A DNA stretch of 64,000 nucleotides from Guillardia theta CCMP2712 (GCF_000315625.1 NW_005434597.1:113912-177911), one strand, 5' to 3'; counted from the first letter of the stretch, positions 4,607 through 60,679 are shown. Program-made: numbers and translations. Notes: generated from the sequence alone by a model not told the origin.

Positions 4607-4683
<77 letters not shown>

Positions 4684-4812: not shown

Positions 4813-4993
4813 TTCTCCTTTTCTCCTCCTCCTTCACCACCACTTCCTCTCGCGCAGACGTAAGGAACCGTGCCATTCTGCCGAAAATGCGCCATAAGCA
4901 TTCCTATCTTGATGTCACGGTGTGGCTCGTAATTCGATTTCCGCTCCACACTGCTCCACAAGTGATGAGGGGGGCTCGCAGACACGTCTGGTC

Positions 4994-24453: not shown

Positions 24454-25030
24454 ATGACTGAGCCGCGGCACCGGGCACTACCCCGGACGGGGGCCCGCCG
24501 GCTATCGGACCGTACTACGCCGGCGGGGGGGCTTGACGGAACCGTGACGGTTCCGTCACCGGGCCGCCGGGGCCCGGGCCGGCCGGGCGGAGAGTCGGAC
24601 CCGGCAGGAGTCACGCTGAGTCAGTGGCCACCAGGCGGCCTTGTAGTGGAACGGCGTCCCCGGTCCATGACCGTACTACGGCGGGCCAGCAATGGCACTC
24701 ACTGAGCCGCCCGGCGCCCGGCGCTCCCGGTCCCCGGCCCGGAGGCGGCGGCTCTGGCCGCTGCCGCAGGCTGCCGCGTGCGGTGGCAGCGGCTCTAACT
24801 TAGTAACTTGACACGGTGCCCGAATTTCGAACGGACCGTCCGGCGCTATGCAGCCAGCCGTTGATGAATAGCCTGAGATCGAGCCCGGCATCGATCTCAG
24901 CGGCGGCAGTGACGGTGAGCCTACTAGGCTACTCAAGGCTGGCCCTAGTGCCGGCCAGGGCCCGCCGGGGCGTCCGGCAATGCTGTCGGAGACGGTCCCG
25001 GGCCGTCACGGTGAGTCCGCCTCGTCGTGT
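24454..25030. other. GC-rich low-complexity intergenic element rich in CCGG/GTGACGG words, with a perfect 12-bp inverted repeat at 24534-24558
   Basis: Abrupt compositional shift and recurrent CCGGG, GCCCGG, GTCACGG/GTGACGG words. TGACGGAACCGT-G-ACGGTTCCGTCA is a perfect hairpin. Confidence 0.6.
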
Positions 25031-25438
25031 AAGCTATAGCAGTCGAACTGGTAGTAACTAAAGTTGCACCTGGTACCTCACAGATCCGAGGAGTCTCGGC
25101 GGTACTAAATTTGTGCAGTACAAGAGCAGATGTTGAGTACTATGTGTACTTCAAGTAAACAAGTGAGTAATTAAATAGTACCACTATTTTAGTACCAGCC
25201 AGTTTCCTGGGGTTAAGCCGAACGACCGTAAGTGCGAAAGGTTACGGCAGGAGGAGAGGGGTGGGGTAGGGGTGGGATGGGGTAGAGGATGAATGAAGAC
25301 CTAGGAAGACTATGAAAGGTTATTATGAAAAGCAGACTCGCCTCAGAACCTTTCCTATCCCTTCACTACCCCACCCTCATAGTTCCTCTCAATGCTCCTT
25401 ACCCGCTCATGCGGGAGTTCAGATAGCAGTCGCCATAC

Positions 25439-28400
25439 ATGCTTGATTTTCATCTGACAACCTCCACTATGCTCCTTCTCTACATTCTCGCATCTTTACT
25501 TCTCTTTCACGCTCAACCTGCCTTTCAGAACAGTGTACAGCATGTAAATCCAAGATGTACAGTAGGTTCTTTCGACTCTACTACATTTGCAAGAGAATTA
25601 CTTCACACATGCGGAGTTCGACGAAATTCCAAATGTAGACAACTTTCAATTGATGCAGACAACATCAATAATGCAGCAGACAGCACTCCTCACACAACGT
25701 TTCGTTACGTTTTTAACGGCACAGTGCCGCATCTTGGTGTAGATCTTGGTAGACCTAAATGGATTCAGAGTATACAAGTCCGGCATATTTCAAAACAAAT
25801 ATCGTCAGGAATTTTGCAAGTTTTTGTTGGAGACGATCCAACTTCATTTCACATCAATCCTATCTGTACTTATAGTAACAGCAACGGAGATGTTTTCAGT
25901 AGAACGCGATTCAATGTTTCAACTACGTATACGATTCCTTGTAACTTGAAAGGGAGATACATATGGCTAGTAATCGCAGACAGCGACCTACGCACGCATG
26001 TTGAAATCGCTGAATTAAGAGTTTTTGGGGGTTGTTCAAAGTGTCCTTCCGGGTATACGACCAACCACAGTGGGGCTGCCAAGCTATCCGATTGCATCCT
26101 GGATTCGGTGAATTTACCAGCTGTATGCAAAGAAGGAGCAAGCGTGCATACCAATGCGATGCAACGAGTAGCACAAATCCTTGCTGCTAGGCCGGCTTGG
26201 GGAGTTTACCACGCCGAAGACTGGGATCCTCACACCAGGACAATATCAGAATCATTCGGTAGGCAGCTGCCGGTAACCAGCAGAGGTGATTTGAGGTATG
26301 AGAAGAAGAAGGGGTTCGGAGCAGATGCACCCATCAGCTCTTTGAATGGCAACATGTCTTCTGCTATGCTGTGGCCTTTTGGAAGTATTCCAAGATCTTT
26401 TACGATATGTGCGGTGACACGATATGCTGGTTCCAATAGAAGGAGGATAATACAAGGATCGACGGATTTCACGTTGGGTCACTACTTCAATGCAGTCGGT
26501 GTATCACATTCACAATCATGGATGACACAGAAGCAGCAGGCTTATTCAAACCCTCTTGATTGGCTCGTGATCTGCACGAAGAATTCCGGGGAAACTCCTG
26601 CGAATGTGAAGGTGTCTTCCTTACATGGAGATGTATTGTCTGTGGGAACCAGCATTGGTGGGGAGGTCTTTGGGAATATGATGATAAATGCTGGTCTCTT
26701 TCCGAATGATTCCAGCGACTTTTCATTTTCACAGGTGTACATATGGGAGCATGGTTTGTCTGCAGACGACATGGAGGCTTTGGTTTATTCTTTGAAATGG
26801 TATCTTTCGCATGGTATTGAATTACGCTATCTTGAATCAGTCTTCAACCCTCAAATAGTCCCTGGATTTGGATGTGATGTACCAGTTTCTTGCCCTTCAG
26901 ATTGGGTTTCAGTTCAGAGTGCCCCCGGCGTTCGTAGTCCCAACCCCCAATCATACCATGAAAGGATAGGAAACGAAGATGCAGAACTCTGTTACCTGCT
27001 CCTGCCATACCAGGGACTGCATAATGTCACAGTATACAATCTGTACTTTCCAAGGGAAATTATGGCAGCAGTGGTTGTCTTGGGTGGAGGTGGGGGTGGA
27101 GCTGCATTCGGTGGAGGAGGCGGAGGAGGAGGTGTCTTGCTGTCGAGATCCTTGCACATCGCGGCTGGCTTTCATTCTGTAACTGTGGGTAGGGGTGGAG
27201 GCGGAGGGGGTTCTGATTGGGCAGAGCCTGGCTGTGGAGGGAGAGGGTTCTCAAGCTCTTTCGACTCGTTCGTTGCAGAGGGTGGAGGTGGAGGAGCCTC
27301 CAGATCTCTACGTGCACAGGTGAAATCCATCGGTCACAACGGTGGGAGCGGGGGGGGAGGCTCGGGAACTCTCAATGCTGGATTGAGCACGCAACGCTCT
27401 TACGAGGGGTTCCTGGTCTTTGGCAACGATGGTGGCTCAGGAACTCTAGAAGATGCTTGCGCAGAAGAACCCCGCTTTTCCCACGGAGGAGGAGGAGGTG
27501 CTGGGGCACCTGGTGCCTCTGGACATTGCTTGCGTGGGGCTGGGGCGGGAGGACGAGGGATAGACGTCTCACCATATGTTGGAAATCGGATAGGGCAGGC
27601 TGGATGGATAGCAGGCGGGGGCGGAGGAGGAGCTCAGAATATGAACGTATCAATGTCAACTGCACAAAATGCCTTTAAGCCTTCAACAAGTCGTGGAGGA
27701 GGCGGAGCAGGAGGATATTTCCAGACATGCACTCCTGGTATATTTGGAACAGGAGGGGGAGGGGGAGGGGGAGGGGGAGGACAGAATAGCGGAGGCTGCG
27801 AGGGAGGTTCAGGGGCTGTCGTTCTCGCAATACGAGGTTCTGCACAGCGAGCTCATGCTGCTGGTGATGCATCTGCAATGCCTGCCCGCTCCTCGCTTCG
27901 TTCTCTTCTTCAGGTGTCGAACTTGGCCAATGCCTCCAACTCATCGGTGGCTGGAGGATCTAGTTCATCGATATCCAACATCTCCAACGCAACCTCAGCT
28001 CCCTCTATTCCTTCTGGGAGTGTGCCTACTACAGATGCAAAGATTACGCTATCAAACTACACTGCAGGCGCTATCACCAATGCATTGATCTCCTTTGCTG
28101 TCCCTCCTACAGCGCCGCTTCGAGAAAACTCTTCATATTTACTTGTTTTGCAGTTTCCAAGGACATTTCGAGTATGCTCCACCACAACGAGACTGGGAAC
28201 TATCTTGATTCCGGCTTCAGATTCCAGCAGTCAAGTCCGTATAGAAAAGGTTCAGGACGTTAGTAATCTGCAAGGATATTATCTTCCATGGTTGAATTAT
28301 TCTCTATTTCAACCCGACAATACGGCATTTTCAAGTGTCATGTACTTTAATCTTAGTGGATCTACAAGCACAAACTCTACACAGTTCATCCAATTTTCCA

Positions 28401-31400
28401 TCCAAGGACTTCAGAATGGACTCTACTCAGGTGATGACTCTCTTGCATGTGATGTTATTTGCCACTGACTGATTGAATTTGCAGGACTCTTTAAACCAAG
28501 TTATGAACAACGGGATTTCTTCGGACTCTTTGTCTTCGAATACCATCCTTATCTGAACTGTCCAGGCTGCATACAGATCATGTTTTATCAACAAGGAATT
28601 AATGATCCTTCATACCCAAATGCGATTCCACTTTACTTTGTTCCGAATTCATTCATCAATGTTTCAACACGACTTGAAGGGCTGAATCTATACATCCAGT
28701 TTCAGTCATCGAGCTGGATTCCTGGCAACGGACGTCTGGAGCTCAATTTGTCTGAGGGTGTTGCCTTTGGCACATCTCATGAAAGCAATAACATCTTGTC
28801 TTATGCTCCTTCATATTGTCCGTCAGAGAGCATAGCGACGCTGGGTTGTGCCATTCAAGGGATTGCTAAGTACAGCAACAAGAACCTCACTGTAACATTG
28901 AACAACGCCTTGGACATTGCAGTTGATTCAACTCTTCTTTTGAATCTCACAGGTGTTGAGACCTTCCTGCCACATACCTGTTCTCTCCCTGGTCCAAGAC
29001 AATTTTGCAGTACGTCTCCAATATCAATACGAGTGTACGAGTCCCCAGCAGCTACGAAGAATTTTCTTGTTGGACAGGCCTATTTGAAGTTGGGTCCGTA
29101 CAATGCTTCGGGAAAAGTTGAAATCTGGCCAAACGTTGCTGGAGCACAGAACGTCTCTATGAATTTTTCGGTGGTTTTGACCAATCCTTACTTCGGCGGT
29201 GATCTCATAAGAGTGTGTGTCCCCAGATATCTGCTAGATGTGACATCATCCGCAAATATATTGTGTCGAGCCCCTTTCGATCTCGATTTGAAAGTCTTCA
29301 AGTCAATTGACTTCTCTTGCTTGAATATCGTGAATCTGAAGCAGAATTTCTCTAGTAGAAAGTTAGATTTCTATTGCTCTGGTTTCGGTTTGAGAAACAA
29401 CAGTGGACCAATCTTCGACAAAATAATGGTTGAAACATTTTCTGAGGGGGTTTACCCAATCGACAAGGGCTACCTTCCTGTAGTTCCCGATCACGTCAAG
29501 TTTGTCGAACTTCAACTGGATCTGAGGGTCAACACCTGGATTTTTAACCTGGTGAATGGTGTTCCAATTTCGAGATTTGCTGAATTTGAAATTTCGTTTG
29601 ATTCAAATTTTGTTATGGGTTCTTCTTTTGCATATTTATCCTTTCAGACTATCAATGGTCCCAAGGCTGAAAGTCTAAACTACACACTCATATCCTCTCT
29701 TGAAAATAGAACGGTACTTTCCTTCAGGCGAACCGAAAATTTTACAATCCCATCCTGGACAAATTTGACAATTCAGGCTGATTTGCTCAACAGAACATAT
29801 TCTATGATTCTGACATGGAATTTTACAATCCTTTCTGATAGAGGGTTGCTGTTGGAACAAGGGATATCAAATACATGGATACCCTATTTTCCAGTGATAC
29901 CTCTCACTATCCGTTCGAATGACTCATCGGCTTCTGCAGCAGCCACTATCACCGCTGTTTTTCCTGAAAAAGTTGTGTTGGACTTTTCTCAGATGGCTGG
30001 GAAAAAGATAGTATCGATCGAGTTCGATCCCTGTTATGACATTCGAGGAGTGCATCTTTCCGTGTCTAATTTTTTTGGATTTGATTTGTCGTTTCCAATC
30101 TACCGAGATCACATCTGGGAATGGAATTTCACAGATACTGACATCTTTCCATTGGCATTTAATGTTGTCATTCAGAGCAACACTGTTGTGGGATATCTGC
30201 AGAGTTCCAAACCGAGTGAATCTCGGAATTCTGTATTTATGCTCCATGCCTGCAAAGAATATTCATTCACCGATTGTCTTCGACCATGTGGTGAACCAAT
30301 ACTCTTTTGTGCTGAGTTAACCACGAACTTTGAAAATTGTACCTGCGTGATGAAGGGGGTTGGCAACAATTCCAACTTTTCGTTCTTGAACTTGGATAAC
30401 CTGAGTATTGCTTTTGCAAACGTTCAAAACCCAGGCACTCTTCAAAAGAATATAAGAACTTTCAACATGAGTATCTATGATAATCTTGGAAGGATCCAAA
30501 ATAGTTCAGAATTTCAGTTGCCATCAACTACTTTTTCGAATTTGCCTGGTGCCTTGTTCAGCGTTGTCCCGGCGGAGGCAAAAGTTCTCTCGACGATTGA
30601 ATTTTCTGGTTTTGCTGTTGGCAGGTGCTTTGCGGGATCCATATCAATCTTTATCCCTGATTCATTTACCCTTTACAACAAGTCGATTGCATTCTTACAA
30701 ACTGCTTTCAACCTATCAAAAACGAATGTTGATAAGCGGATTCAACTCCAATTCAAGCCAGAATTGTATGTGCCATTCAAGGAATACTTGATTGCAAGAG
30801 GGAGATTGTATGATGTCATGACAGAGTATTGGAGCCTTGCAAATGAGCGAGTTGTTCAATTTCAGATGCGACTGGAAGAAACAATTATGAATCAATCTAT
30901 TATTGTCGGTGAGTCAGGAGTTCAAAATATTACACTTCGTTATCCTCCATTCAGGTTCGTGTCCATGCAGATGTTGGGAGATCATGGGATCAACACCTTT
31001 CAATATGTGAATCTTTCAATCAAGTTTTCCTTTTCCAAGATCAATCTGCTCTCAAACACTCGATTCAATATAACTCTTCCAAACAGTCTTTTTCTCAGAG
31101 ATGGCATACGGTCAATCACTATCAGTTTTTTGTGCGGCGGGAACGACTGTTTCATCTCACAAACACACGACATTTTGCTTCGTAACTTGTTCTATACAGC
31201 AAATAGCAATAATGTTATCCTTACATTTGTTCCTCTTATGCCTCTCTACAAACCTTCATATTACACATGCTTAAATGCAGGTCCAGATTTCGACGAGATT
31301 TCATTTGTGATTCCGAATATCTTGCTGTCATATTTCGAACGAGAGGTTGGCGTTGTCACATTAGAATTGCAACAGATGGAATCCCATAATATCAAAATTT

Positions 31401-34400
31401 TGAATCGCACATATTACAACATTAGTGAAATCATTGCGCCGTACATTGTGAAGTCAGCCATCTTGGAGTTTGTTCCTTCTGTGATCAATCAATCGTACAT
31501 TCAAACTTCTTTGGAGGTAAGAAGACCGCTATCTGACAGGGATCGGATTCTTATTGAATTTCCGCTCACGTTTTCCACATGTCCACTGGGGGGATGCAAT
31601 GTAAATCAACTGCGATCGATGAAATTGAATTCATACAGATCGATAAAAGTATCAACGTGGGTCAATGACTCCCAACAGATCTTGCATGTTCAGAATGTCT
31701 CATTTGAGAATGACCAAAAGAGCATTTCCTTCCTCATCGGACAAAATGTGTCTGTAGGGACGAATGTTTCTATCAGAATGGAGGGGTTCGCATTTCCTTA
31801 TGTACCGGCTCCACAAATCCAGTTCTTGAATTTGACGATCTTTGAAGGTTCCTCCAGCAGAGTGATTGGGAGAATAGCATATACCCGTGCCCTTAGTACC
31901 ATTCTACCAAACCCAGGTGCAGCAATGACATATTTGAGCTCAACCATAGCAGGTTCACAAAGTAATTTTTCAATACTGTTTTTGAATTCCTTTACTTATG
32001 GCATGTTTCAAACTATTAACATCACCACGATTTCGGATTTCAAGTTCGACTTTTCGAGGACAGACATCATTGTATTCATCGGGCAATCCAGAATTGATTC
32101 TCTCACTGTTTTTCGAGTGAACCGGGAGGCTCTGTATCTGACTTTCGATGTACAGATAAACACCTATGCGCTTGTCGAAGTGCTTCTCATTGGTGTGTAC
32201 AACCCACCAACTTCTGGGCGCCTGAACAAACTTGCCTTCTCGGTAGCTGACCAAATGTTCTCGAACTACAGCACAAGTGTACTTGAGAATATATTGACGA
32301 CTCCAGGGAATATTTTGGATCCCTCCATGAACCTGTCAAACCATTATCCTGGTCAAGTCGTTGAAATGATCTTGAAATTTACTGTTTCGAATTCGATCCC
32401 TCTACATGGACAACTGGATATTCAGCTGCAAGATATAAACATAAATGCAAATGCCTTGCAGCTTCGAGAAGCATTCTTTCAAGACGTGTTTGGGACAAGG
32501 CGTTTTTTCATTGGAAATCTTACACAGCTTGGACAGAATATTTCAATTACAATTACAAGTTTCCCTCAAAATGAGATCGGAACGAACCTTCCTCAAGGAA
32601 TTCAATCATTCAGTGGAGCAGCCAATTCTCAAGTGATTCCTTCATTCAGCAACGTCACGCTCCGTCTTGACGGCTTGGAAACGTTGCCATACGTTTCTCG
32701 AGTCTTTTTTTCCATCCAAACAAAGCAGTACTTTGGTGATTACATTGACATAGTACATAATGTAGCAGGCTCTCAAATAGTGCCAGGAATTGTTGAAGGA
32801 AACTTCCAGCTTCAGATGCCATATGTTTCAATTTTCACTCCTTTTGCTCTACACCTATTTCCGTCGATCGATTTTGTTTGCGGCTACTCCATTACAATAC
32901 AGTTTCCTCCCTCAATCCAAAACGTAATGTTTACTAACTACAGCAACATTCTTGGAATTATGTGCAATGTGACAGTAAATCAGTCAAATCCACAAACATT
33001 TTACATAAATTCGTACAGACGAATGGAATCGACTTACTCAAGCAATCAAACAATTTTATTCAAAAATTTGTCTTTAATCGGTTATCTCAAAACGCCAAAT
33101 GTGTCTGGAACATACAACAACATCAACATTTCAGTGCTGAGTAGCAATGGAATCCCGATTGACTTAGGACAGGGCACATTAAGTGTAAACTATTCAAAAT
33201 TTACTTCTGTTAGAATGTACGCAAGGTACGACTTTTATCGTGGAGGATTATCTGCAGATACCCTAGGATCAAACTTCCTGACGATTTCTATTCGACCATC
33301 GGTGCCCATTCTTGGCAAAGTTTTGCTGATCCTAGAGCTTCCGATTTGGCTGGCAGCATCCAATCCAAAGCTACTTCAATGCAACTTTGGTCGATGCATC
33401 CACTCTCTGACTCCACTGAACAGTACGACGAATTCATTGCCTTTCAACGCATCTCAGAGCTTCTTCCAACTCGTGGAATTGACTTATGATCCTAGAGTCA
33501 ACATCAGCATAGGCTTCACCTTGAAGTCGTTCTTCATACCTTCCCGCTATGTTCTCCCTGAGCAGTTCTTTGAGATTGCCTTTGGAATAGCGGACCAAGA
33601 GTACAACCTGATACAAGTTGGCACAGCAAGGCTGAACTTGTCCCAATCAAGACTACAGAGGGTTCCGGTGCTGACGGCAGTTGATTACTTGCCACCCCAG
33701 CTTTGGAATAAGTCGACCTGCACGCTTCCGAATGCTGCTTTCTGGCTAAACAATTTCACTGTGAATGAATCTTCCTTCTTTCAAGTATTCTCGTTCATGA
33801 CAAATCAAGAAATTCCAATTTACGGATTTGCTCGAATTGTGATCCCTTTGAATCAATTACGCTTGCTGAATCTATCAACCATTTCGTTCAATTCAACATC
33901 AATGGTAAATTACAGATCATGCTCGTATCCGCTTCGAACTAGATGTGAGGAAAATTTTGGAGAAGCGAATTACTCGTTCACAAATTACTCGCTCAACAAA
34001 GGACTTGAAATTTCCATCCAATTTTTTTCTGAGATTCCAAACGATTCAATTGTGGATATCTTCAATCTGAGCCAGCCATTTCCCTTCGTCAATCCAATAT
34101 ACTCTCAACTTTTCTCAGGAAATTTCTCTGTCTACACTGTCGACAACGTTTTTAATCTCATTGATACCAGTGAGAACTTTGTACCACAATATTGCCAATT
34201 CTCAAATCGTTACACACTCACCTTCACAGAAATTTTAAATGTTTACCTTTGGGATGAACGAGCAAGCTCTCAGCAGTATGATCAGCTCTATGTTCGCAAT
34301 GGGTACCTAGGCGGAAAAGGAGGCTTCTATTTCAACCTATCTTTTCAAACTGGAATTCGAACCAATGAAAAAATTGTGATTTCCTTCCCAAGAGACTTCA

Positions 34401-37400
34401 AGATCAATCAGTCAAATCTCGCTTTCTTTGACAACTGCCTATTGACTTTACAAGGCAATTGTAAGACTCCTGATTTCAAGAAGAAGGTGCCACCACCGAA
34501 TTGCACCAACACCTCCTACACTTGCTCCAACTGGATAGATGTATTCCCTTCTATTTGCAAGCAAAACTGTACGCAATACCAATCCATCGGGAATCGTTCA
34601 TGCACTAACTTCACGTTGCAAAATGGAACAGTTGCAACCTTGTGTACCTCGATCGTCACGAATTACAGTTCATGTGCGATCCCGTACTTTTTTGTGAACG
34701 GATCTGTTTCAAAACTGTGTCACAACATCTCATTTTGTAAGAGTACTTCCTTTTGCTCCCAAGAGATAGTCACTACCAACGTGTCGATATGTACGAATTG
34801 GACGTACTCCAATTCCTCCAACGCTTCACAGGTGTGTAACAGCTGGTCGCAAGTGAATCGTTCGACAACTGTACAGCGTTGCACGTTGACGTTGAACACA
34901 TCTTGCACTTGGTCTTCGAGGTGCTTCGACAACACAAGCAATACGACATGCCAGAACAAGTCTTTATGCACCCAATGGGATGAGACTAACATTACTTACC
35001 CTTGCCCTGAGAATTCTTCTCAGTGCCTTTATGGACCGCTTGAATCATTTAATTACACCTGGGGACTTGTCGAGATTCCACCCAGGAGCACAAACCCACC
35101 TGATCGGTACAATTATTCTCTGAGACAAGCCATTGTAATCACTTATTATGGTAACTTGACGCTCAAAGGTTTCTCGTTCAGTCTTGATGTTTCAAACCCG
35201 CTCTACGGATTAGGATATCCTCCAGATATACATGATCGATACTCATACTTGGTGGTGTTGAAAGGTTTTGATATTGCTGGAATGTATAGCTTTGGCGTTC
35301 AGGAGAGAATAGAGTTTCAAATTCTTGTTCTTCCTCAGTTGCTTAACGTTACAAGCTTGTCGCAGAATACAACAGCAGGGGCTCTTGCTGAGGTTAGGTT
35401 TTCTTTGAATGCCTTGGAATTCCTCTGGCCGAATTCACCACAATTAACCATGCTATTTCCAGCTGGAAGTTATAGTACTAGGTACAGACTAAACACCAAT
35501 CCTGGAGCCGTGATGTACTTAGAGACGTTTGCAAGCTTTAGCCAAGCGATCAATTTATCCGTCCAAGTTTTCAATCCTTTTCCTCATCCCACAATTATCC
35601 AAAGTGGAGTATACACTAACCCGTCATTAACGAATTCCACTAGTCCTCAGCTGTGCGTCAATTTGAATTATTCGTGCTCGGACTGTTTGGCGCCAGCAAA
35701 GTCGTATTCGTATCAACAGCAATATCTGCTGATGGACCTGTCGCATGTTGTCAGCAATGCACAAATTAATACGACCCTGAATGCACTGACGGTCACAGTA
35801 CATGATATTGGAAATCCACTGGAAGCAAATATTCTCCCTGGATATTTCGATTTTACTATATCGGGGGAGTTCTTTAATCAGAGGCAAATCATAGCTAGAG
35901 CCTTTGGTATTCCTGCAGAGCGAACGACTGTGGGAATTCTGACAGTGGATCAAGTTGATTTGATAGAGAATGTTGTGAATAGAGAAACCAGGGTGAATGT
36001 AACAATTTCTTTGTATGGTGTTCTGGCGAACGAAAGCTACCTTGAATTCAGATTAAGTCCACAATTTCCGTTGTACTTGCGCAATGGTACCTTCGTTACC
36101 TTTCTGTTCTTACAGTACGAGATACAGATTGTAAATTACAATCAAGACATACTGCAAATTTTCCTGTCTGATTCTCAGTTGACGGAGATGTACAAAGCCA
36201 TGGAGTACAACGACGCCATTCAATCAAAGATCAGCGTATCCTTCTGTTGTTTGCAAAACCCTCCCCATTATGGATTTTACAATGTTATTCAAGAAATTAG
36301 AGCAATTTCAAACACATCGTATCTTGCAGAATTCCAAGGCAACTCTTCCGTGAAAAATAGATTATTAGAAGACTATCGTACGATGAATATTCAATTGTTG
36401 ATCAATTTGGAAAACAAATCCTCGTTTGGCAAAGGTGGAATCTCCGTGACCATCAAATTCAATCAAACAATCTATGCAGATAGTATTGTCAGTGTTTCTT
36501 TTCCTGTGTCTCCATTCAGTCCCTATCAGCAATACTCCAATGTATTTTACGACGTCCAAACTTTGAGACAATTCTCCGTTTTTGCTCATCTCAATCAGTC
36601 GGTGGAGTCAACATGCCAGAAATACTTAGTTTCCAACTGCCTCGATCCGGTTGCTGCAAACATTAGCATCGTGGAAAGCAATGATCCAGGCACTCTGTCT
36701 TTTCGTTTTGGATCGGATGTCCATCCTTGCCAAGGAAATTGCTCTAATTCTAGTAGTGGCTTGATCGCAATGTCAATTGATGGCAAACTTCAGAATCCTC
36801 GACGTCCTGAGTCAAATTTCCGCTTGAATGCTTCATTATATTTGAAGAATCCATTCAAAGTACAGTTTCTCTCTCCTTTCAAGAATCTTATGGAAATTCA
36901 TTTCCTCACTGGACCACTAACCATAGAAGCCTTTAAAGCACCTTTCACATCCCTTTACTCAAGCAGTCGATTGGCAGGATCGATCACATGGCTTGAGATT
37001 GAATACAGAACAATATCTGGCATGCAAGCTAACACCAAAGACTATATAGAAGTAACACTTCCGAAAGGGTACAAGGCATTGATGAGCACTACCGTTTTCA
37101 ACTCGAATGCCGTTCAAAAATTTTATCCTGGCTCAATATCTTGTTTGAAGACTCCGATATACGCTGAATGTATCAGTTTTGATAATCGGAGCTTCGGATC
37201 GTTGAACATTAGTACCCAAGTCCTAGGTCACACTCGGGGAATTTATGGAACTTTGCAATTGACGAAAGCATCCAACAATTCCCTTATATTCGAGCGTTGC
37301 TCCAACAACTTTGATGTTCCCTTTAACACAACGATTCTGTTTCGATTTGGTCCAGTCGTGAATCCTTTGCCTGCAAGTATCAGCTATTCTGGGAAGACTG

Positions 37401-46400: not shown

Positions 46401-49400
46401 ATGTTTCCACCACAAGACAAGCTTTTTGCCGCACTTTCACCCATCCTCAGGACTGACTCCTGGCCTGCTTATCAACTAGTCTCCATCTTGAATACAAGCT
46501 CGAACTATGCGGTGAAATATCGCCTTGAAGTTGGAGAGGAGTACTCCCTACAACTTCGTGGAGTGAATCTGTTGGGACAAGGCCCGTTATCTTCACCCGT
46601 AGTTTTCACCGCAAAAAAGCTTCCAGAGGCTCGATGGCTTCCTGCAACATACTATCCGAATTTTCAGTTTCAGCTCCATTGGTTTCCGCCAAATTATGAT
46701 CCAGAAATTTCAATCTTGGAGTATAGACTTCAACTGTTTCTGAACTGTGCAGACCAAAGTACTTCGTACAACGCTGTGGCATGTTTACTTGGGGTGAAGC
46801 CGACGTCATGTTGCAGACTTGGAGAGACGTACTATCTTGGAAACGTCACTTCATACCTTCTGTTCCTTTACAACGTAGACATCCATCAAAGAGTAGACTT
46901 GTACCTCTACCCTGTTTTTCAAACTACTCAATATCCCTATATTCAGTATGGGGCCCCTGCTGTAAGCAGTATTTTCACGGTCACGCAGCCGTCAGGGGTG
47001 AGAAACCTAGAAGTTGGTTCAGCTTATGGACGGAATAGAATATTTAGCGGATGGCAGTCTCCTGTGGACTTCGGCATTGGCCAAGATGATCCATTGCATT
47101 TCTCAAAGCAGTATAATCTCATTTTCTTTTACAATCTGACTGTAATTGGTAGTGATGGTACAGAACATGTCCAATGTGTTGCATTAGACGGAACTGGATG
47201 TGATTGTGGAAATCTGCAGAGTTGTTTCCAGGCTGTGCAATTTTTTGTAAATGTACAATTGATTTCTCCTTCACAACAAGGAATATTGAGCTCAGAAATA
47301 GCATATTCCATAAAGGTTTCTATGAAAGTGTCGAATTTTGATGGTATTTTGCTGTTTGATACACCAGTGGCTGAAGGAAGCGTTTGTGCTGAAGAATTCC
47401 CTCTAAGTCCGACCAGCTTATCCGTGAGTAACGACGGGACCGGTAGCTTCACTGCTCATTGGATAGCAGAAGTTAACGGTCCATGTGGAAAGAATTTTAT
47501 TAGCAATTTCCTTCTGCAAGTATCGGACCATGATTACTTTTATCCTATTTATGACCAATATAATTTCACAGATCTCAGTAGCGAGTGTGGAATACTTGGG
47601 CAAGTGACAGGAATATATATATCTTGGCAAGAGCGCACATGGCACTCCCCAGGGTTTGTGGATGGGCACCAGTATCATTTCCGAATCTTTTCACAAAATC
47701 CTTCTGGCACCAGCCTCCCTTCCAACATAGTTTCTATTTTCAAGAGAAATACTCTACCCATAGCTTCTTTTGGAATTCCAGGCACTGAAGTGATCTACCC
47801 AGAGAGCGTATCGCTTCGCTTTACAGTTTGCTTCCCAGAAAATTTTTCAATCCCATACTTGCATGTAAAAGCTTGTCCAATTTCGCTTTGTACTCAGCCT
47901 CTCTACCTACGAATCTGGGTTCAGCAGAATTGTTCTGAATATCGAGTTCTATTTCCAAATCTTGTGAAAGGGACTTTTTACAAGTTTGATATTGTAGGAC
48001 CTTACAAGAGGCCCAGCGATGTTTATTCCAAAACGATCTATGAAAGGAGTGTCGGGCTACCTGGATTGATTGACCCGAACTCTGTGATTGTCTCCAATCC
48101 CTTTGGGAAATCTGGAAGTCTGGAGCTCTCCTGGCTCCCACCTGTGGAGAAAGGGTTGGGCAAGGGAAATGATTTCTTGTTGGTAAATTATTCTGTTTCC
48201 ATGTATACTTCTTTGGACAAACCTCCAAATCAAACAATCATTGTCAGTGCTGTTTACAATGTTTCAGAGCAAATACTCAGTGCAGGTTACAATTTATCAG
48301 AGCAAAATGCGCAAACTGGCACTTCTGAATACACTTCTCAAGGAGTCCTTGATCCAAGATTACGAATCTACTTTAAACTTCCTGTGAATATTTCGGGATT
48401 CAGCGATTCTTACACCAACAATATGAGCCTCTCTGGTAATGGATCCCGTCTGATGAACAAGCATTTTCTGTCTCTAATCGTTGATGGTTTGCTTCCAGGG
48501 CAGACTTATTTTTTCACAATCTCTGCCTCCAATTTCCTCGGGTATGGACCTTCAGTGGGTGTCAAAGGCGAGATATTTGGGAGGCCCAGGTTTCATCCAC
48601 AAGCTCCATCACGTTTCAACGTCGATGGAATGAACGATGCTTTCAGTATGACATGGCATCTAGATCGCATCACCCAAAACTATAGATACCTTGAAACTGT
48701 CTCAGCATTCACACTACAGGTTGAAAATGGTCCTGTCATCAACAATTACACCATTTCCAATCGGACATTTCGATACGGCCTTACTCTTCCTAGAAAGAAC
48801 AAGACCGAACAATTTTGTTTTTCCATGTTTGCTTACAATGAAGTGGGGCGAAGTCCGTCATCCCAAAGAATTTGCTTTAATTCTTCAAATTTTACTGTTT
48901 CAAACTACAACATCTCGAAAGTCTGTAATTACACTGGATGTTTCATAGTTTGGCCGGACTTTCTGAATGTGGAAGCTGGTACGTTGTATGGAGTAGAATT
49001 GGAGTATTGCAGAAAACCATATCCATGGAATTCCTTCGGTAGGTCACCATGGTGTGACACAGAGTTCATTTCTGAGTCATCGTGCAACTTCTCGAATTGC
49101 GCGACAAATCTCTACGGCATATCCCTAGGAGCTTCATTTCCTGTGCGCTATCGGATTTGGAAAAGTGTTTCAAACCTTGGAGTCGAGAGGATTTCTAGTG
49201 AATGGATAAGTGATACACTTTTCTTTGATCCGCTTAACAGCGGAAGTGTAATTTTTACAGGCGTTTCTTTGCAACAAGCATCCCAGAATGCTGTACCACA
49301 ACTCAAGTTGATCGTTGTCGTGAAAAACGTGAGATTCTCTCTCAACACTTCTTTCTTAAAATTGGTGTCAAAGAAGAATTCGTCCAACAGCCTTATTTTA

Positions 49401-52400: not shown

Positions 52401-55400
52401 CCTCATAGCTACATCGAACAACTCGTGCCAAGCACGTCAGTCTCGTACACTTGGACTAAAGTGAGTGTTTTTGCTGAGAACTTTCCATGGGGCACGCTTC
52501 AACTTGATTCCTTGATGGCTCGTGTTGGCGATGGGTTCGTGTATGTCGAGAGTGCCTTGAACATGTCTGAGAGTAAGGCCCTCTTTCAAATCTCGACGCC
52601 TCCTCGTCCCTGCACATTTGAGCTTTGCAAGAGTACTTTGAGTATTGTATCCAGGGATCAGCCTGAGATCTCAATAATTTCTTCTTATCATTACTATGAA
52701 AGCTCCATACCAATAATAGTTGAAATTTCACCCAAGCGCTTGTATTCATCAATGTCCGGAGTTCCAATCTTCGTTACTCTCAGGAATTTTCATTACACAA
52801 GCAATATTGCAGAGCTCAAAGTTTGGTCTCTTCACAACCTATTCACTCTATCAGAAATTTTCTACTCTGATCCCTACACAACCACTTTGAGGCTCAATTT
52901 CTCGTTGGGTAACAATACCATCCAGAGAGAAGAATTGTTCATCCTGCACAAACTATTCTCTGGTATGTTTGTTTCAGCTTTGATCGACATCTATATTCCT
53001 TTGCCCACCATTCTTTCTGTCTATCCAAAAGAGATCTGGAAAGACCAGGAAACTACCGTTGTTCTCATGGTAGAGAACTATCCATACTCCACATCATTCA
53101 TGTTGAGAAATTTTGTATATGAACGCGTGCGGTCGCCAATCCAACCAAGAATATCACTAGGAAGTGTCGTGATATCAAAGTATGACATTTACGAGATCAG
53201 TCAAGGATTCAATAACACTGTCCAACTTTCCTTCACGGTGTTGTTTTCCGCACTGGGACCAAACACCATTCAGATCTCCCACTTTCAAAACCCTTTTGAG
53301 AGCATAACTTCGTTTGATGTGTTCGTGAAAGATTCGAGTGAAGTCTTGTTTAAAAGCTCGGAAGCGTTTACAGTTTTGAGCTGTTGCTCAAAGCTACTCT
53401 TGGATGTTGTCAATGCAGTCCATGCTGCTTCATCTACAGCAATTTTGAACAACAATTATGTTCCATTGTCAACGTTAAAAAATTATGGAGAATATTCCAC
53501 AATTCAACTTGACCTTCCGACAGTGCCAAATGCAGGGATTCACGTGTTGACAATCCTGTCATTCCCACAGATAACACAGGCATCGCTTATCGCAAGGGAG
53601 ATTCCTTTGATCTACATCCAGGGGTGCGACTTGCACTCCTTCTGCACATCTTGGGATATGGTAGTAGGATTGAATGTCAAGACGCTAATTGAACCTTTGT
53701 CTAATTGTGATATCCAATATTGCGATGTTCCTTCAAAGATTCCTGAGCTCAGGATTCTGAGTGTTGAGAAAAGCTATGGTGTAGTGCAAGAAGCGTTTTA
53801 CAACAAGATTGTGGTTGAGAACCTGATTTACATCACTAAAGCAGATGTGTGGGTGAGATGTAATGAGTTGAATATACCCATCGTTCAGGTCTCAGAATTG
53901 CTGGATCAGCGGACTTCTGTGATCTTGCAATATCCTCCTTATCCAGCTAGTCAGACACTCGAATGTTTCATTTCTTCCCAGATTGACATTGAGAGGTCTG
54001 CGTCATTCTCTGTCAACCTTCTTTCGATTTCAGATTTGAACAAGATTACGCTATTACCGTCGCCATGCATTGCAAATGCCCTCACAACCTTTACAGTCTA
54101 CATCGAACACTGGATCTCGTTTGTTCCAGACAGAAAGATTGTCGTGAGTGAGATAAACCATACGCAAGTCATAGAAGCATGGTATGATTATGGTACTCTG
54201 ATAAAACTTCAGTTTGAGTGGTACTGCAGCAATTCCACAATCAATATCTCCCAGAATGGCTCGCATGAACAATTATCCGTCAATCTGCAGGCAATTAAAC
54301 CATATGTGGTTTCGATCTTTCCTAGTGTCGGGCCGGCTGTTACGGAGACAGTTGTTTACCTGACATTGGCATTTCAGAGCGCTTGGATGCCAGCCGTCCA
54401 TCTCAATAGTTCTTATAATCAAAGCTTCACAAATCTGACTGCGATCTCTACAGCTCAAAATGGAATTTTTCTCCAAGTAAGCTTCAAGATGCCGAAGATT
54501 GTTCTTGCTGATGGTTTGTTGTCTGACTCATGGAGAATATTCCTTGAATTCAAACAGGAGAATGAAATCTTCGAGACTCAATTCCTCGTGCAAGACATCA
54601 ATAAGATACCGATCTTTCAAACCATGTCCGATCCCAGTGGAAAAGAGGAGATTCTTTTGTACATGAATGGACCTCGTGACCTTGTAGAAAAGTATTTGGT
54701 GTATGTAGTTGGAAATCAAAATGAGTCAATCTTAGAATTCATACCTATGGGCTCTCAGTATTTCTTCCGTCTTCCAGTTGTCAATTACACCCATTTGAAT
54801 GACCCGGTACCTGTTCAAATTTATGACAGTGCTCAAGCGCTGAACTTAGCTTACTTTGTGTATAAACCAAGGTTTGCCAGTCTGTTGAGTGTCATTCCAA
54901 GCTCTGTGATCATCAATAGAGTTGTCACGGTTACGTTGAACGTCAGCAGTCTTTTCTACGTCTCGAATCGTACGGGCACATTGAGGATACTTGTCGGCAA
55001 TGAAATGGCTCCGGATTGGAAGGTCATCACCTCCGATCATTATTACACCACTCTCAATGTAAGCGTCCCTCCTCTGTCGAATGTTGCCTCAACCTCGGTC
55101 ACCGTTGAAGATTTATTGACGCGACAGTCGTGGTCTACGGAATTCTTAGTAATGGCTGCACCCAAAGTAGTAGAAGTTATTCCGTCTAGAGGTCCAGAAT
55201 CTGGGTTTCAAGTGACGGTGACTGGACAGTACTTTCCCGAAGTCTACGACACTCGAAACGTACAGATACAATGTTCCAACAAGCAAGGGAGAGTGGAAAA
55301 GGTCTTTTGGTCCACCATCTGGTTCACAGCCATATTGGACACTCCCTTGTTGACAGGAAACACCCGAACGAGTTGCAGTTTGTTGCTTCATGGTGGTGTG

Positions 55401-58400
55401 ATCGATCGTTTCAACCTAAGCATATACCAGAACCCCACCGAGCTGTTGAGATCTGATCAAACCGTAGCGATCAATAATACGCTTAGAATTGACCTTGATG
55501 TTCAGAACGCTCCAGAGAGCTCAGCAAATGCCATACTTCAATTGCAAGTATTGAACTCTCAAATGCAGTTGTTGGGTGGCGCAAAGATTCTATCATATGT
55601 TGCTGAAAGCCTGGCGATAGAGCTTCCTCCATTAGACTCCGGGCACTACATTTTGTATTCAAGGCAGCTTAACGCAAGGAATTTACTTCCCTTCGTCGTT
55701 CCAGACCCGTCATCTCCATCCATTACAAGAGTGAATCAAGATGTCGGCTACTCCTTCATTCTGACCCTGAATGGAGCTCCTATTTCAAATGAGTACATTG
55801 TGAAGTGGTCGAATGTGTATGGCACTGTATTAGAAGCAAAACAAGTGAATACTCAAACAAGTTTACATTTATACTTTCCTGCCAGACCTTCCCTTGATAT
55901 TTCTGGAAGTGTATTCGAAGTGTGTTCGAGGCTACAACCAAAATTCCATTACATCATTGGCTATGTTTGGAATAATTGTTTTACCAAACAAGCTGTTCTA
56001 GATGCCCATTTCACAACCATTCATCTTGAAATCTCAGAGGAATGCAAATACGTGGGGTTATCTTCTGATTGCCTCACCCTGTTCGACTTGGATTCGCAGA
56101 TTAGCTTCGGCTCTGGAAGTAAATGTCTCATGGATAATGCTCATACCTTGACAGTCTACCTCGGCTTGGATTCTTCCATTTTGCCTGGACACAAGGGAAA
56201 GCTGTTCGAATATTTGCCACCTATTGCAGACCTGGATGTTGTACAAGTTCCTATTGACTTCGTGGTGACCACAGAAGGTGTTGTCCTGCCGCCTGTTGGA
56301 GAGTTGTGGGGTTCTACTGTCATAGGACCGAATGACATGGCATCCATTGGTTTTGTCGGCCCTTCAATGCGCATTCTTCAGTATGAATGGAGGTTCATAC
56401 CATCATTCAACACTAGTAGTAGCTCACTGCAAGCAACGTTCAACACTTTAATTGGAATTCATGAGTCGACGCTATCAGTGCCAGCATTTCTCCTTGGATC
56501 AGCATTAGAATACATCTTTGAGTTACGAGTGACAAACTTTCATAACAGAAGCAGTTTGTTCCGACATTCTTTGCGTGTCGTTCCGCTGTTTTTTCCAAGT
56601 TTAATTTTGCAGTATCCTTCAATAGCTCAAAATTCAACGAAAGTTGATGTGATCGCAAAGTCATCATGTCAGGGATATAGCTGTATCTTACAGACCCAGA
56701 AGTTGAACTCAATGTCGTTTGTTGTGGAGGAACTTCTGTACCCAATGCACAAGAAATTCTTCTACTCCAATGAAACACTGACATTTCCTTCAGACGGTTC
56801 AATTGCCAATGAGTACAGGATCAAACAAGGAGGGCTGTTCACAATTGATTGGTCTCATTTCGGTTCTATCGATCTCAAACAAGAGGGTGCAAGTGTGCTG
56901 CCTCGGAACTTTGTTAGAAATGGGTATCCGGTGCTAGTCGATGGCAATGGTACTCTGATTCGACTGGAGCTTTGGTATAAATTTGATCTTGCAACTGGCA
57001 TGGTCAATGACTCCAGTGGAAATGATTTCAATGCATCGCTTAGTTACGGCATGAAATATTCAACTCAAGGAATCAAAGGAACGAATTCTGCCATCTTCCA
57101 GACTTCGTTGGATTCGTCTTTGCAAATTTCGATTGACTTGGATCTTCAGCAAAATGTGGGTTACTCCATTGCTGTTTGGATCATGTTCACAGTAAAGTCT
57201 GGGAGAAACAGTGTAGCAATCAACTTCGGGAATGAAGCTGGGACTAGCAGGTTCATCATTGGCAGGTATGAAGACTCTCAGTACCTCATCTTCGGGCTGT
57301 TCTCGGGAAACCGATCCGTGCTGAACCTTACTTCCTTTCCGGGGATAGATGACCAGTGGCATCACTACGTTTTGTCCCTTCTCCCCGGAGCAGAACCCTC
57401 AGGAAACAACTCCGTGACATTATGGATAGATGGGAACGAATATTTCACCTCTCGGACGGTCCCCGAATATGTCAACTTACTTTCAGGTTCCCCAAGGACG
57501 TGGTTCCTAGGCAAGCCTGCACGGTGGACTGACATGTCGTTTGACGGACAAATGGACGACTTGCGTTTGTATAGGCAGCCATTGACCAACTCGCAAGTGA
57601 ATATACTCTTCTACGGGAACTTGTATCATCTCCGCTACTTCTACACAAACCAATCAAACATTGTTGTCAGCAATATTGGAATCTCTCGCCTTCCTGGTTC
57701 CACTGTAGATCAAGAATCATTCCTTGCTTCACTTTCGTCTTCAATCGCTACATCTAGGATAGAGTTCAACTCCACTAGCTCACAATTCGCAGTGAACAGC
57801 TCAAGAATTGCCACGAATCTCAGCTACAGTGCTGAAAGTTATGACTTTCAAGTAGGAATAAGCCGAGCATACTCGCCCTTGTCCTTTCAGCTACCGGGAA
57901 AGATCCGAGTACTGCCAGCAGATGCCCATGCAATCATCCGTGTTGACAAGCCATTGGCTACATCAAAGCATATCATCTTGAACGGCTCACTTTCATATGA
58001 TTCTCAAACGGGTCCGAGCTCTGTTGATTACAATCTCGAATGGAAATGCTTTGAACAATTCTCAAAGTGTCTATTCATGAACGCTCCTTATTCTGGAGCA
58101 GTTTTGAACATATCAACGTTGGCTTTACAACCTAATACACGATATGAATTCGAGTTGCGCGTCAGTACTTCTGATGGCAGAGAATCAAGTTGCTTCGTCG
58201 AAATTCTTGCTGACAGCAATCGCGGTTTGCAATTCTTCACGATCAGCCGAGTGAATTTGAGTGAAGTGTGGGATCGATTCGAAGGCAACGTGAGCATCAT
58301 TCTTGTCGACTCTCAACATCCCGTGCTGAGCCTCAAGGAAGTAGGATACTTCCCTCCTCTACACGAGATGGCCAACTTGATCTCCTTTTCATCATTGCAG

Positions 58401-60554
58401 GCCAACATCGCTTCATTCAAGCTGCCTTTCATCGACGGATATCAAATACAGGTGAAACCTATGAGGTATCGACTTCCCGGACTCCTTACTTCTCTACTTT
58501 TCCTTGATAAATCTCTTACTCAATTGCGACGAGGTGTGTGCAACATTTATGAGGATTCATTCTATATTTCAAACCTCACCGTCCCTGTTTCTGGCATTGC
58601 TGTCGAATGCTCTTCTTTCTATTCCCGAGACGTGCCTTTGACCTACAAGTTTGCCGCTGATCTGAATGGAAAGCAAATGAGCTTCTTGCGCACCTTCGAA
58701 CCCACTTTGGTGTGGTACATCTTTCCTTCAGGAAATCTGCAAATGACTGTCACTGTACAAGATTCCAAGGGTGCAATCCAGCAAGTGAAAACAAACCGTG
58801 TAGCAATCAATGGCTCAAGAACTTTGATAGACATCTCTAGCTACTCAAGCACATTCATTATGGACTTTTGGCTGGTCTCACAGGATTATCAATCTACATT
58901 ACAATACATCTTTGTCGCATGCATTCAAGGGTTGAACTCTGATTCTCTAACAGTCGTGTTACAGTCTTTGAAAGGAATTGCTGGCGTCCTCATTCAGTCC
59001 AATTCCTTTGATCTTGCAGTGTTGGAAGCACTGAATCTTGTTATTGAAACTCAACAAGCATTTGGGATGATTCACTACCAACTTCTTTTAGACTTGTTAA
59101 AGGGAATTTCATATTCTTCTGTGTTGGGCGGTGTTATCACGTTTCAAAATGCTGAGTTGGTGGGAAACATCAGTTCTCAACTTGTTCGACTTAGTCAAAA
59201 ATCTGCTCAGAATCCTGACATTCAGAAATATATTTTGAATGCTGCCATTTTGTTCTTGCAAACTTGCTTCTCCGTGTTAAATTACAGTGATTTAGTCATG
59301 AGTCCATTGTGTAGTTACAGCCCCACAGTCACGACTTGTGTGAGGAATTTGTTTTTTCAAAGCGATTCAGTGATAGACATTGCGCAAGACCAAAAAGCCT
59401 CCATCACGCTGACACAGGAGGTGAACGCGTTCCTGGTCTTCAATTACTTGCCCAACACACAAGGCATGCCAGGATCCATCGTGTCAGGGTTGCTTACGTT
59501 GTCTCTCGTTGACGACAAGGTTACAGGCGCCTGCTCCACCTCTCCTTGTTACTTCGAGCTTGAACTACCAGCCGATGTCTCGCACCTCCCGCCCTCTATG
59601 CAGGATCAGTTCTTTGCTGGTACAGGAGCTGTCTGCGGCACTTGGAACAAGGCAACGGGAGGTGCTTCTTCCAGCAACTGCAATCTCATCTCAACGACGA
59701 GAAGTTTGAACATGTGGGGTGAAAGCACGGGCTACGGTACAGTCAAGTGCATGTGCCGCCTCCAGGATGGAACATTTGCTGCTATCATAAACGCCTCGCA
59801 TACTAAATTTGTTGCTCCGTCGCCCATATCCAACGATGTCTACATGTTGCATTCGGGCAGCAATCTTGCTGTCGACTTGTTCGTTCAGTCCGTGGGGATT
59901 CCAATCATTCACGTGATGGACAACATGGCGCAGGTTGCAATCTCTCCCGAGAAATCCGTCGTTGTGAAAGACTGTGGGTGCTCGTTGTATCAATTCAGGT
60001 ACACAAACTTTCAGTTAAAGACTCAGAATTTTTCTCTAGCCTTCTACCTGATCGATGGCAATGCCACCAGGGAAACCATCTCGCTCTTCGTGCAAGTTCT
60101 CTTCTGCCAGGATGTACTTCTCCCCGGGCAGAACGTGATCGACTTGGCGCAGAGACACCACTTAGATTGGCAAGCTCTTCTTACCCTCAACTCTGAGATC
60201 CTGAACCCCAAAGAGATTTATTTACAGCCACCACGAAGGCTGTGGACCTGCTCAGAAACTTTGCAAGACTGGGGCCACTGTAAGCTCGAAGGGCTCACGG
60301 GGTTTGCCATCTTGCGCATAGGAAAGATCCACCGCATCCATGCTGAGAGACTGCTAGGAGTCATTCACAGCTACCGAGCCTCGTTCACACAAATTGTGAA
60401 GAATAACGTTGGTCGTCTTGGCATCAGTAAGAACATCACAGACTTCTCATCGTATGAATCAATGGTTTTGAATTCAACAATTGCCAACAACATAGCACCT
60501 GAAGGTGAAGAAGTTTGTATCGTCTCTGACTTATCAGATGTTTGTTACGTTTAG
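25439..60554 (+). CDS. Giant (~11,670 aa) secreted multidomain protein, polycystin-1/REJ-GPS-like ectodomain ending in LysM-like domains; exons 25439-28430, 28485-42392, 42436-60554
   Basis: ORFs of 1009, 4614 and 6047 aa join in frame via introns 28431-28484 (GT..CTGAC..GCAG) and 42393-42435 (GT..CTAAC..GCAG). Exon sum 2992+13908+18119 = 35,019 nt = 11,673 codons including the stop. Signal peptide MLLLYILASLLLFHAQPA. Domain motifs are listed in the findings. Confidence 0.88.
28431..28484 (+). other. Intron 1 of the giant gene (54 nt, phase 1)
   Basis: CAG|GTGATG...CTGAC...TTGCAG|G. It removes the in-frame stop at 28466-28468 and restores an open frame into the 28580 ORF. Confidence 0.85.
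42393..42435 (+). other. Intron 2 of the giant gene (43 nt, phase 1)
   Basis: CAG|GTCCC...CTAAC...TTGCAG|TG. Removal shifts exactly from the ORF2 frame to the ORF3 frame (YLP-V-LLQSR). Confidence 0.88.
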
Positions 60555-60621
60555 CTTTGGATAAAAGTTGTTGTTTCGGTGTTCGTGAATAAAAGCTAAA
60601 TCAACCCAAGTCGTCAGCAGG

Positions 60622-60679
60622 TGCTACTCTGTCGCTTAATCATACTTTCATGCTACTCTGTCGCTTAATCATACTTTCA
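60622..60679. repeat. Perfect 29-bp tandem duplication (TGCTACTCTGTCGCTTAATCATACTTTCA) x2 just 3' of the giant gene
   Basis: Two identical adjacent copies at 60622-60650 and 60651-60679. Confidence 0.92.

Follow-up and report, generated by a model that had tools for sequence, protein, structure and literature searches.

We analysed a 64,000-nucleotide (nt) stretch of the nuclear genome of the cryptophyte Guillardia theta CCMP2712 (GCF_000315625.1 NW_005434597.1:113912-177911), hereafter the window, in which all coordinates below are counted. Positions 25388 to ~60633 hold one nuclear gene on the + strand, which gives rise to a ~35.1-kb mRNA and is interrupted by two short GT-AG introns. Excision of both introns leaves a single frame of 35,019 nt with its sole stop codon at the end, encoding an acidic protein of 11,672 amino acids (aa), whose mass and isoelectric point are calculated as 1.296 MDa and 5.8. 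Its sequence makes it likely that this giant is one secreted, N-glycosylated protein that would act as an extended extracellular fibre and would, structurally or as an adhesive, form part of the surface coat (the surface periplast). The gene is built as follows.

25388..25438, +, 5' untranslated region (UTR); transcript contigs start at 25388-25404, i.e. 35-51 nt before the ATG
25439-28468, +, open reading frame (ORF) 1, 1,009 aa
25439..28430, +, exon 1; codons 1-997 plus 1 nt, with signal-like peptide and head cassette
28431-28484, +, intron 1; 54 nt, GT..AG, GTGATG...CTGAC...TTTGCAG, skipped in three transcript contigs
28580-42424, +, ORF 2, 4,614 aa
28485..42392, +, exon 2; 13,908 nt, no Pfam match
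42393-42435, +, intron 2; 43 nt, GT..AG, GTCCCT...CTAAC...GTTGCAG, overlapping words missing in transcript-like runs and present in DNA runs
42411-60554, +, ORF 3, 6,047 aa
42436..60554, +, exon 3; 18,119 nt including the TAG stop codon at 60552-60554
60555..60633, +, 3' UTR; AATAAA at 60588-60593, 34 nt past the stop codon

An initial annotation, made from the sequence alone, had placed three ORFs at 25439-60554 on the + strand and had proposed their fusion through two short introns with branch-point words. The ORFs lie exactly there, both introns have canonical ends, contain branch-point-like words (CTGAC in intron 1 and CTAAC in intron 2) and join the ORFs in frame, and the predicted 35,019-nt frame, ~11,670 aa and mass above 1.2 MDa agree with the computed values. 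The check on transcripts across both junctions, which it had suggested, also turned out in favour of splicing. One raw RNA-seq run (X14) and three transcriptome-like assemblies from two studies were aligned to positions 24800-30799. In each of the three assemblies, a single contig of 32,616-32,750 nt skips exactly the 54 nt of intron 1 between its GT and AG ends. For intron 2, splicing is supported indirectly, by the word content of the runs: none of six sampled words overlapping this intron occurs in the three transcript-like runs (X2-X4, the same three assemblies), as against six of six in four DNA runs, while a fraction of 0.99 of the words sampled from 40000-45000 is present in X2-X4. The 3' ends of the three large contigs, computed by counting from the aligned part with intron 2 alone removed, fall at 60510, 60605 and 60633. 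The latter two lie 12-40 nt downstream of the AATAAA signal, and the contig ending at 60510 stops inside the coding sequence, 44 nt before its end. At the other end, separate contigs, which start at 25388-25404, account for the 5' part of the gene, and short contigs tile 27187-27741. Within the 5' UTR region two short upstream ATGs occur in other frames (window 25393-25458): the first, at 25393, lies within just one of the three contigs and starts a frame of 21 codons overlapping the main ATG, and the second, at 25410, starts one of 5 codons.

In the public annotation this gene is present as broken pieces only. The sole Guillardia protein found within the size range searched, GUITHDRAFT_143626 (hypothetical protein, 3,285 aa), spans aa 241-4072 of the giant, lacks several stretches that were excised as false introns and ends inside exon 2; it is a truncated, mis-spliced fragment of the giant gene. 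The Joint Genome Institute (JGI) model likewise joins exon 1 to exon 2. No exon 3 match was found among Guillardia proteins of 3,321-10,566 aa, and a literature search found no paper naming GUITHDRAFT_143626. Our gene model thus corrects a badly fragmented one in a reference cryptophyte genome.

The protein starts with a signal-like sequence, and a hydropathy scan of the whole protein detects aa 11-29 as its sole strongly hydrophobic span, with no membrane-like span beyond the N-terminus. It contains 318 N-glycosylation sequons, compared to 136 +/- 10 in shuffled sequences, and a similar excess is seen in the ortholog from Hanusia phi and in most frames of the paralogs described below, including the largest frames of paralog C85. 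Both the signal peptide and the sequon density had been pointed out in the initial annotation. From these features we infer entry into the endoplasmic reticulum by an N-terminal signal, the lack of a membrane span and heavy predicted N-glycosylation. Along the protein, the following regions can be delineated.

25439..25516, +, signal-like hydrophobic N-terminus (aa 1-26; hydropathy scan)
25715..25963, +, F5/8C, galactose-binding-like (aa 93-175; E 0.014, 16.5 bits, cut-off 27.8)
26030..26095, +, Ephrin_rec_like Cys unit (aa 198-219; sub-threshold, 19.5 bits, cut-off 23.1)
26156..26923, +, conserved head domain (aa 240-495; many genomic paralogs, no Pfam match)
27065..27829, +, Gly_rich_2, PF21722 (aa 543-797; E 1.8e-14, 54.8 bits, cut-off 24.3)
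27977..42367, +, divergent beta-sandwich array, DUF2808-like (aa 847-5625; twelve units detectable)
38471..38992, +, modelled stalk unit (aa 4327-4500; nine-strand beta-sandwich, predicted local distance difference test score (pLDDT) 74.6)
44832..45899, +, EPTP-like region (two weak matches, 44832-44930 and 45789-45899; E 0.017-0.029)
47406..47735, +, fn3 (~aa 7291-7400; E 5.3e-7)
55161..55298, +, IPT/TIG-like (sub-threshold, E 0.006; significant in paralog C85)
57123..57599, +, Laminin_G_3 (aa 10530-10688; E 1.7e-14)
57822..58217, +, REJ, PF02010 (aa 10763-10894; E 3.7e-10, 39.4 bits, cut-off 25)
59628..59789, +, GPS-like Cys/Trp motif (aa 11365-11418; kept in both paralogs and Hanusia)
60114..60227, +, degenerate LysM-like segment (aa 11527-11564; aligned with the LysM of paralog C234, which is Pfam-significant)

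The domain order read from motifs in the initial annotation is in large part borne out, though with different strength from one domain to the next. Four of its modules, the Gly-rich domain, FN3, the C-terminal LamG and REJ, are significant Pfam matches in the giant itself. F5/8C is sub-threshold in the giant but significant in the head of paralog C251 (33.9 bits, E 4.9e-8), which shares 30% identity with the giant over aa 11-491. Similarly, EPTP and IPT, which with fn3 belong to a central section of ~4,800 aa, are weak in the giant and significant in the collinear paralog C85, where EPTP is found at the aligned place with an E value of 1.9e-11. The N-terminal LamG-like domain, on the other hand, was not confirmed: the ~250-aa region concerned, aa 240-495, is a much-copied domain that resembles LamG solely in a last-strand motif, has no Pfam match and, when compared by hhalign with the profile of the Laminin_G_3 paralogs, obtains a probability of 2%. 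A profile of this head domain found nothing in the PDB, and phmmer searches against PDB sequences returned Gly/Ser-linker noise alone for the head and nothing for the tail.

At the C-terminal end, REJ is present in paralog C85 as well, whereas this paralog gives no Laminin_G_3 Pfam match and is ~320 aa shorter across the aligned interval. The GPS-like assignment holds at the level of a conserved Cys/Trp motif and not as a Pfam GPS match. This motif reads AVCGTW...NC...VKCMCRLQDGTFAAII in the giant, and both paralogs conserve it in the form VC..W....W..GC...C.C..(L)..T.A; the HL-T/S cleavage triad was not found at this place, the giant having RLQDGT and the paralogs PALST or PSLAT. Pfam GPS matches none of the three giant genes, while elsewhere in the genome nine GPS domains score at or above its cut-off. 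For the LysM-like segment, PF01476 gives no Pfam match in the giant at E <= 10, nor did the genome scan detect one there, yet the aligned segment of C234 scores 21.2-25.1 bits, above the cut-off, and a four-sequence family profile matches the LysM structure 4uz2 at E 0.001. PLAT, PKD_channel and 7tm gave no Pfam match in the giant.

The largest part of exon 2 is taken up by a stalk, for which Pfam, applied to the whole exon and to tiles of it, yielded nothing credible. Self-BLAST found no internal repeats at E < 1e-3 (best pairs at ~29% identity), which argues that the stalk is not a recent amplification, and an ESM Atlas feature search with the first 900 aa of exon 2 returned unnamed clusters alone. 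An exhaustive search with a profile built from aa 3961-4847, the ortholog and the paralogs was more informative. It retrieved 257 proteins, most of them via a unit that recurs every 130-135 aa and of which unnamed metagenomic proteins 5,400-6,400 aa long carry up to ~40 in tandem; one unit-bearing protein lies on a bacterial contig, downstream of the genes for EF-P and EarP and two genes from an SLH-domain gene. An iterated hidden Markov model (HMM) of the unit detects 12 units in aa 847-5625 of the giant at E <= 0.01, 8 of these at E <= 1e-6, as well as 28 units in C85, 26 in C234 and 32 in another Hanusia giant. The first unit of the stalk (aa 847-1004, E 3e-7) straddles the intron-1 junction. 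Since the units of the giant measure ~170-180 aa each, its ~4,800-aa stalk is probably made of 25-28 such units, the majority escaping detection.

A structural model of one unit, built on a 137-sequence alignment, folds as a nine-strand beta-sandwich. Its neighbours in the PDB are generic (cohesin, CBM2, integrin calf and pilins, with template-modelling (TM) scores <= 0.46), and its closest neighbours among predicted structures are an EGF-containing oomycete cluster (TM 0.67) and a Bacteroidota DUF7619 secretion cargo. As such, the ~11 kb of Ig-like repeats in the initial annotation are indeed beta-sandwich units but belong to a specific, unnamed DUF2808-related family that also occurs in bacteria. 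The analysis thereby defines a beta-sandwich stalk unit common to bacterial giant surface proteins and eukaryotic giants.

Relatives of the giant were found at several distances. In Hanusia phi (EukProt), the ORFs 747640-...AAC.2 (4,654 aa) and AAC.1 (5,676 aa) match aa 1045-5632 and 5717-11422 with 57-58% identity, so that the ortholog is collinear with the giant across >10,000 aa. The shared contig number of the two ORFs suggests one transcript contig. Homology of AAC.2 breaks off exactly at the intron-2 site, and 23 further, unrelated residues then close the frame, which fits an intron retained at the same position as Guillardia intron 2. In the Guillardia theta genome (669 contigs, 87,145,349 bases), the loci C85 and C234 run collinear with the giant between aa 3961 and the C-terminus, with 20-28% identity (C85, 21-25%), and 27 further matches exist for the head (aa 20-900). 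The main paralogs, in coordinates of their own contigs, are:

161745-195361, -, paralog C85 (L027-L030); frames of 3,659 + 3,025 + 3,058 + 1,452 aa, gaps of 3-20 nt
4184-37985, +, paralog C234 (L032-L035); frames of 3,654 + 3,012 + 3,089 + 580 + 965 aa, close to the C85 giant
737-7852, -, head paralog C251 (L037-L041); 2,372-aa frame with significant F5/8C, then Gly-rich, plus LamG-like

The C85 and C234 genes encode ~11,200 aa each, and the C85 giant combines its 28 stalk units with DUF7949, TIG, EPTP, fn3, REJ, the GPS-like motif and a LysM-like end. Guillardia theta therefore has at least three genes with ~34-35 kb of coding sequence each that have been cut up by standard annotation. Given the Hanusia ortholog, the C85 and C234 paralogs and a homolog from environmental DNA, the sequences place the giant in an old, fast-diverging family with named members solely in the cryptophytes Guillardia and Hanusia. 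The architecture, which had been described as unrecognized, thus belongs to a small, uncharacterised family but is not unique. Searching by words for homologs of the last 773 aa gave no match of 425-1,353 aa, longer or shorter relatives falling outside that size range. The environmental homolog (L043) lies on an ENA metagenome scaffold of an uncultured eukaryote (40.6 kb, 44% guanine and cytosine), is of the C85/C234 type and collinear, and comprises at least four same-strand frames of 2,643, 1,928, 2,970 and >277 aa, spaced by 67-159 nt. Among the head paralogs, C251 continues in further frames up to ~50 kb, with ~15 kb of N in the contig and the gene incomplete; others have open frames of 5,461 aa (C138) and 3,239 aa (C150).

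Altogether, these data suggest how the giant may be built and used. Its N-terminal head would be lectin-like, composed of an F5/8C-like domain, a Cys unit, a family-specific 250-aa domain and the Gly-rich domain. This head would be followed by the ~4,800-aa stalk of some 25-28 DUF2808-like units and by the ~4,800-aa fn3/EPTP/TIG section, and Laminin_G_3, REJ, the GPS-like motif and a degenerate LysM module would form the C-terminal end. Such a chain could form a rod in which some 60 or more domains of beta-sandwich type reach far from the cell, with putative carbohydrate-binding-type modules at both ends (F5/8C in the head, Laminin_G_3 and LysM in the tail). One end may be held on a glycan-bearing cell-surface layer, and the lectin-like head would be displayed at a great distance from the cell. 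The candidate anchor is the LysM/REJ end, since the REJ/GPS-like/LysM end is common to all three giants, whereas their heads differ, and is thus the likelier attachment. A more far-reaching version, which we regard as speculative and rather unlikely, is that the giant and its two ~11,200-aa paralogs are the high-molecular-mass polypeptides that self-assemble into a cryptophyte-specific extracellular structure, the surface periplast or the tubular flagellar hairs, with a stalk unit also found in bacterial surface giants, a soluble GAIN-like module tethered by LysM and on/off expression acting as a life-stage or condition switch.

Several observations weigh against the proposed gene and fibre. 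The 5' 2.3 kb of the transcript lie in separate contigs, with a depth 4- to 40-fold below that of the 32.7-kb body. That the mRNA contains no further introns is suggested solely by the computed 3' ends of two of the three contigs, 30800-40000 and 45000-60554 lying outside the read alignment. LysM, F5/8C, EPTP and TIG all stay below Pfam thresholds in the giant itself, Pfam does not recognize GPS there, and an AlphaFold2 model of the C-terminal 543 aa, computed from a four-sequence alignment, reached a pLDDT of only 39.7 and was unusable for a fold search. Furthermore, the choice of the anchoring end is a guess, and any location, glycosylation, polymerisation or binding ascribed to the giant is a prediction from its sequence.

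The low 5' depth raises the question of whether one or two units are transcribed. An abundant 32.7-kb mRNA, devoid of signal and head, might start from an internal promoter near 27.79 kb, next to a rare full-length or head-only transcript from 25.39 kb; indeed, all three large contigs start at 27787-27798, and the contigs upstream are those of lower depth. Yet this break falls within the Gly_rich_2 domain, alongside a flagged repeat at 27742-27786, and since Gly_rich_2 has many genomic paralogs, assemblies are expected to break near 27.79 kb. Moreover, the depth given for a contig is a flat mean, and 5' coverage drops in long mRNAs selected by poly(A), so that the low depth is compatible with the loss of 5' sequence from a poly(A) mRNA of 35 kb as well as with an internal start. 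The gap is mostly tiled by low-depth contigs, and the raw RNA reads of X14, few as they are (11 on 6 kb), lie on both sides of 27.79 kb at similar density. A sequon-full stalk that lacks a signal peptide would also make little sense. Because the frame stays open, a stalk unit spans junction 1, the JGI model joins exons 1 and 2, and X14 reads lie on both sides, we favour continuity of exon 1 with the body and consider two units improbable. That the ORFs are three separate genes, as the stop codons between them in genomic DNA and the end of GUITHDRAFT_143626 inside exon 2 might suggest, is extremely improbable given that both junctions are spliced in the transcript assemblies, that single contigs measure ~32.7 kb and that the Hanusia ortholog is collinear over more than 10,000 aa.

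As to function, the giant could, instead of belonging to the body surface coat, be a structural subunit of tubular flagellar hairs or other cilium-associated fibres. In structure, the stalk unit is closest to the oomycete cluster with a TM score of 0.67, which carries EGF domains; EGF-like domains occur in the hair proteins of stramenopiles, those of cryptists being still unstudied in 2017 (PMC5756292), and the paralogs have an EGF-like motif (A1 consensus) and a DUF7949 match. The giant also has an REJ module, and mastigonemes of Chlamydomonas are organised by the polycystin PKD2 (PMC7265326). In the giant itself, though, the EGF-like motif is lost at the aligned position, no sequence homology to known hair proteins was found, and the structural match is that of a generic beta-sandwich; we therefore deem this role doubtful. 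Another conceivable function is that of a shed sensor or tether, in which a GAIN-like self-cleavage would leave a ~27-kDa LysM stub and release, or spring-load, a fibre of 1.27 MDa. Such a mechanism is favoured by the C..W..C..C.C..T.A motif after the REJ module, which is kept in all three paralogs and in Hanusia, and from the helices followed by strands, as in GAIN domains, in the low-confidence C-terminal model. With the His-Leu-Thr/Ser triad absent, Pfam GPS matching nine other domains of the genome and none in the giants, and a C-terminal model of unusable quality, we hold cleavage to be quite unlikely, and the secreted surface-coat fibre stays the reading that we prefer.

Giant modular extracellular proteins are a known kind, and several systems resemble the one described here. 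With the polycystin-1, sea-urchin REJ and PKDREJ proteins, the giant shares an REJ module, a GPS-like Cys/Trp motif ~470 aa further on and a very large extracellular region with Ig-like, fn3 and lectin-type domains. It differs from them by lacking PLAT, a transmembrane segment and a channel-like region and by ending in a ~250-aa soluble tail with a degenerate LysM, with neither a Pfam GPS match nor an HL-T/S triad. ADGRV1 (VLGR1), a giant adhesion G-protein-coupled receptor, combines LamG/pentraxin-type domains, EPTP repeats and a GPS-type motif with a Calx-beta stalk and a seven-transmembrane (7TM) region. The giant resembles it in its LamG-type domain, EPTP and terminal GPS-type motif on a very long beta-sandwich array, but it lacks the 7TM region and detectable homology, is made of DUF2808-like instead of Calx-beta units and is twice the size.

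Giant fibrillar or repeat adhesins of bacteria, as well as the metagenomic giants P0005 and P0008 with their 30-40 tandem units, share with the giant the ~130-aa unit family (HMMER E down to 1e-207 for proteins with many units), the tandem beta-sandwich stalk and binding modules at the ends. The giant, in contrast, is eukaryotic and spliced, has ~170-aa units that are too divergent for self-BLAST and carries F5/8C, Gly-rich, REJ and LysM as terminal modules. Pfam DUF2808 (PF10989), whose function is unknown, matches the unit region of C85 (29.1 bits, cut-off 25.3) and, weakly, the unit-bearing proteins P0009 and P0011, while the giant itself gives no match at E <= 1. Finally, Perasso, Ludwig and Wetherbee (1997, cited in PMC12223506) reportedly described a high-molecular-mass polypeptide that Komma caudata secretes and that self-assembles into a surface periplast component. 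It is likewise a secreted, very large cryptophyte product forming a surface layer, the kind of product expected of the giant gene; it comes from another species and is not known to have been sequenced, so that a link to the giant is a hypothesis, a lead and not evidence.

The DNA of the gene was already public. New are the correct gene model, the three-giant family, the stalk unit with its bacterial relatives and the combination of REJ and a GPS-like module that ends in LysM with no membrane span. On the whole, the interpretation in the initial annotation is supported for its one gene, signal, sequons and Gly-rich, FN3, C-terminal LamG and REJ domains, and is not confirmed for the N-terminal LamG-like domain and a Pfam-level GPS. 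The giant provides a sequence-level candidate for cryptophyte surface structures, and its REJ and GPS-like module, with LysM instead of membrane helices, offers a natural test of whether modules of this kind function outside membrane receptors.

The gene was assembled in three runs at contig depths of 74-340. Its expression looks conditional and strongly dataset-dependent, and it may depend on condition or life stage. Almost none of the gene's words occur in ten other RNA-labelled runs with the same species label (X15-X24), three of which are very small, as against 99% in three runs; a word count of zero in a run is not proof of absence. One run labelled as freshwater metagenome (among X8 and X10-X12) contains 57% of the words of 40000-45000 and six of six intron-2 words. 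Guillardia theta being a marine alga, this run may reflect contamination, a spike-in or a mislabelled sample.

Beyond the three giants, the repertoire of large extracellular or receptor-like proteins in Guillardia theta looks rich. At least nine GPS domains are Pfam-significant in the genome, and some of these belong to open frames as long as 4,681 aa. LysM gives 54 matches at E <= 1; 36 of these attain the cut-off, 5 of them only when neighbouring matches are counted in. Other LysM-ended secreted giants are found in this genome as well.

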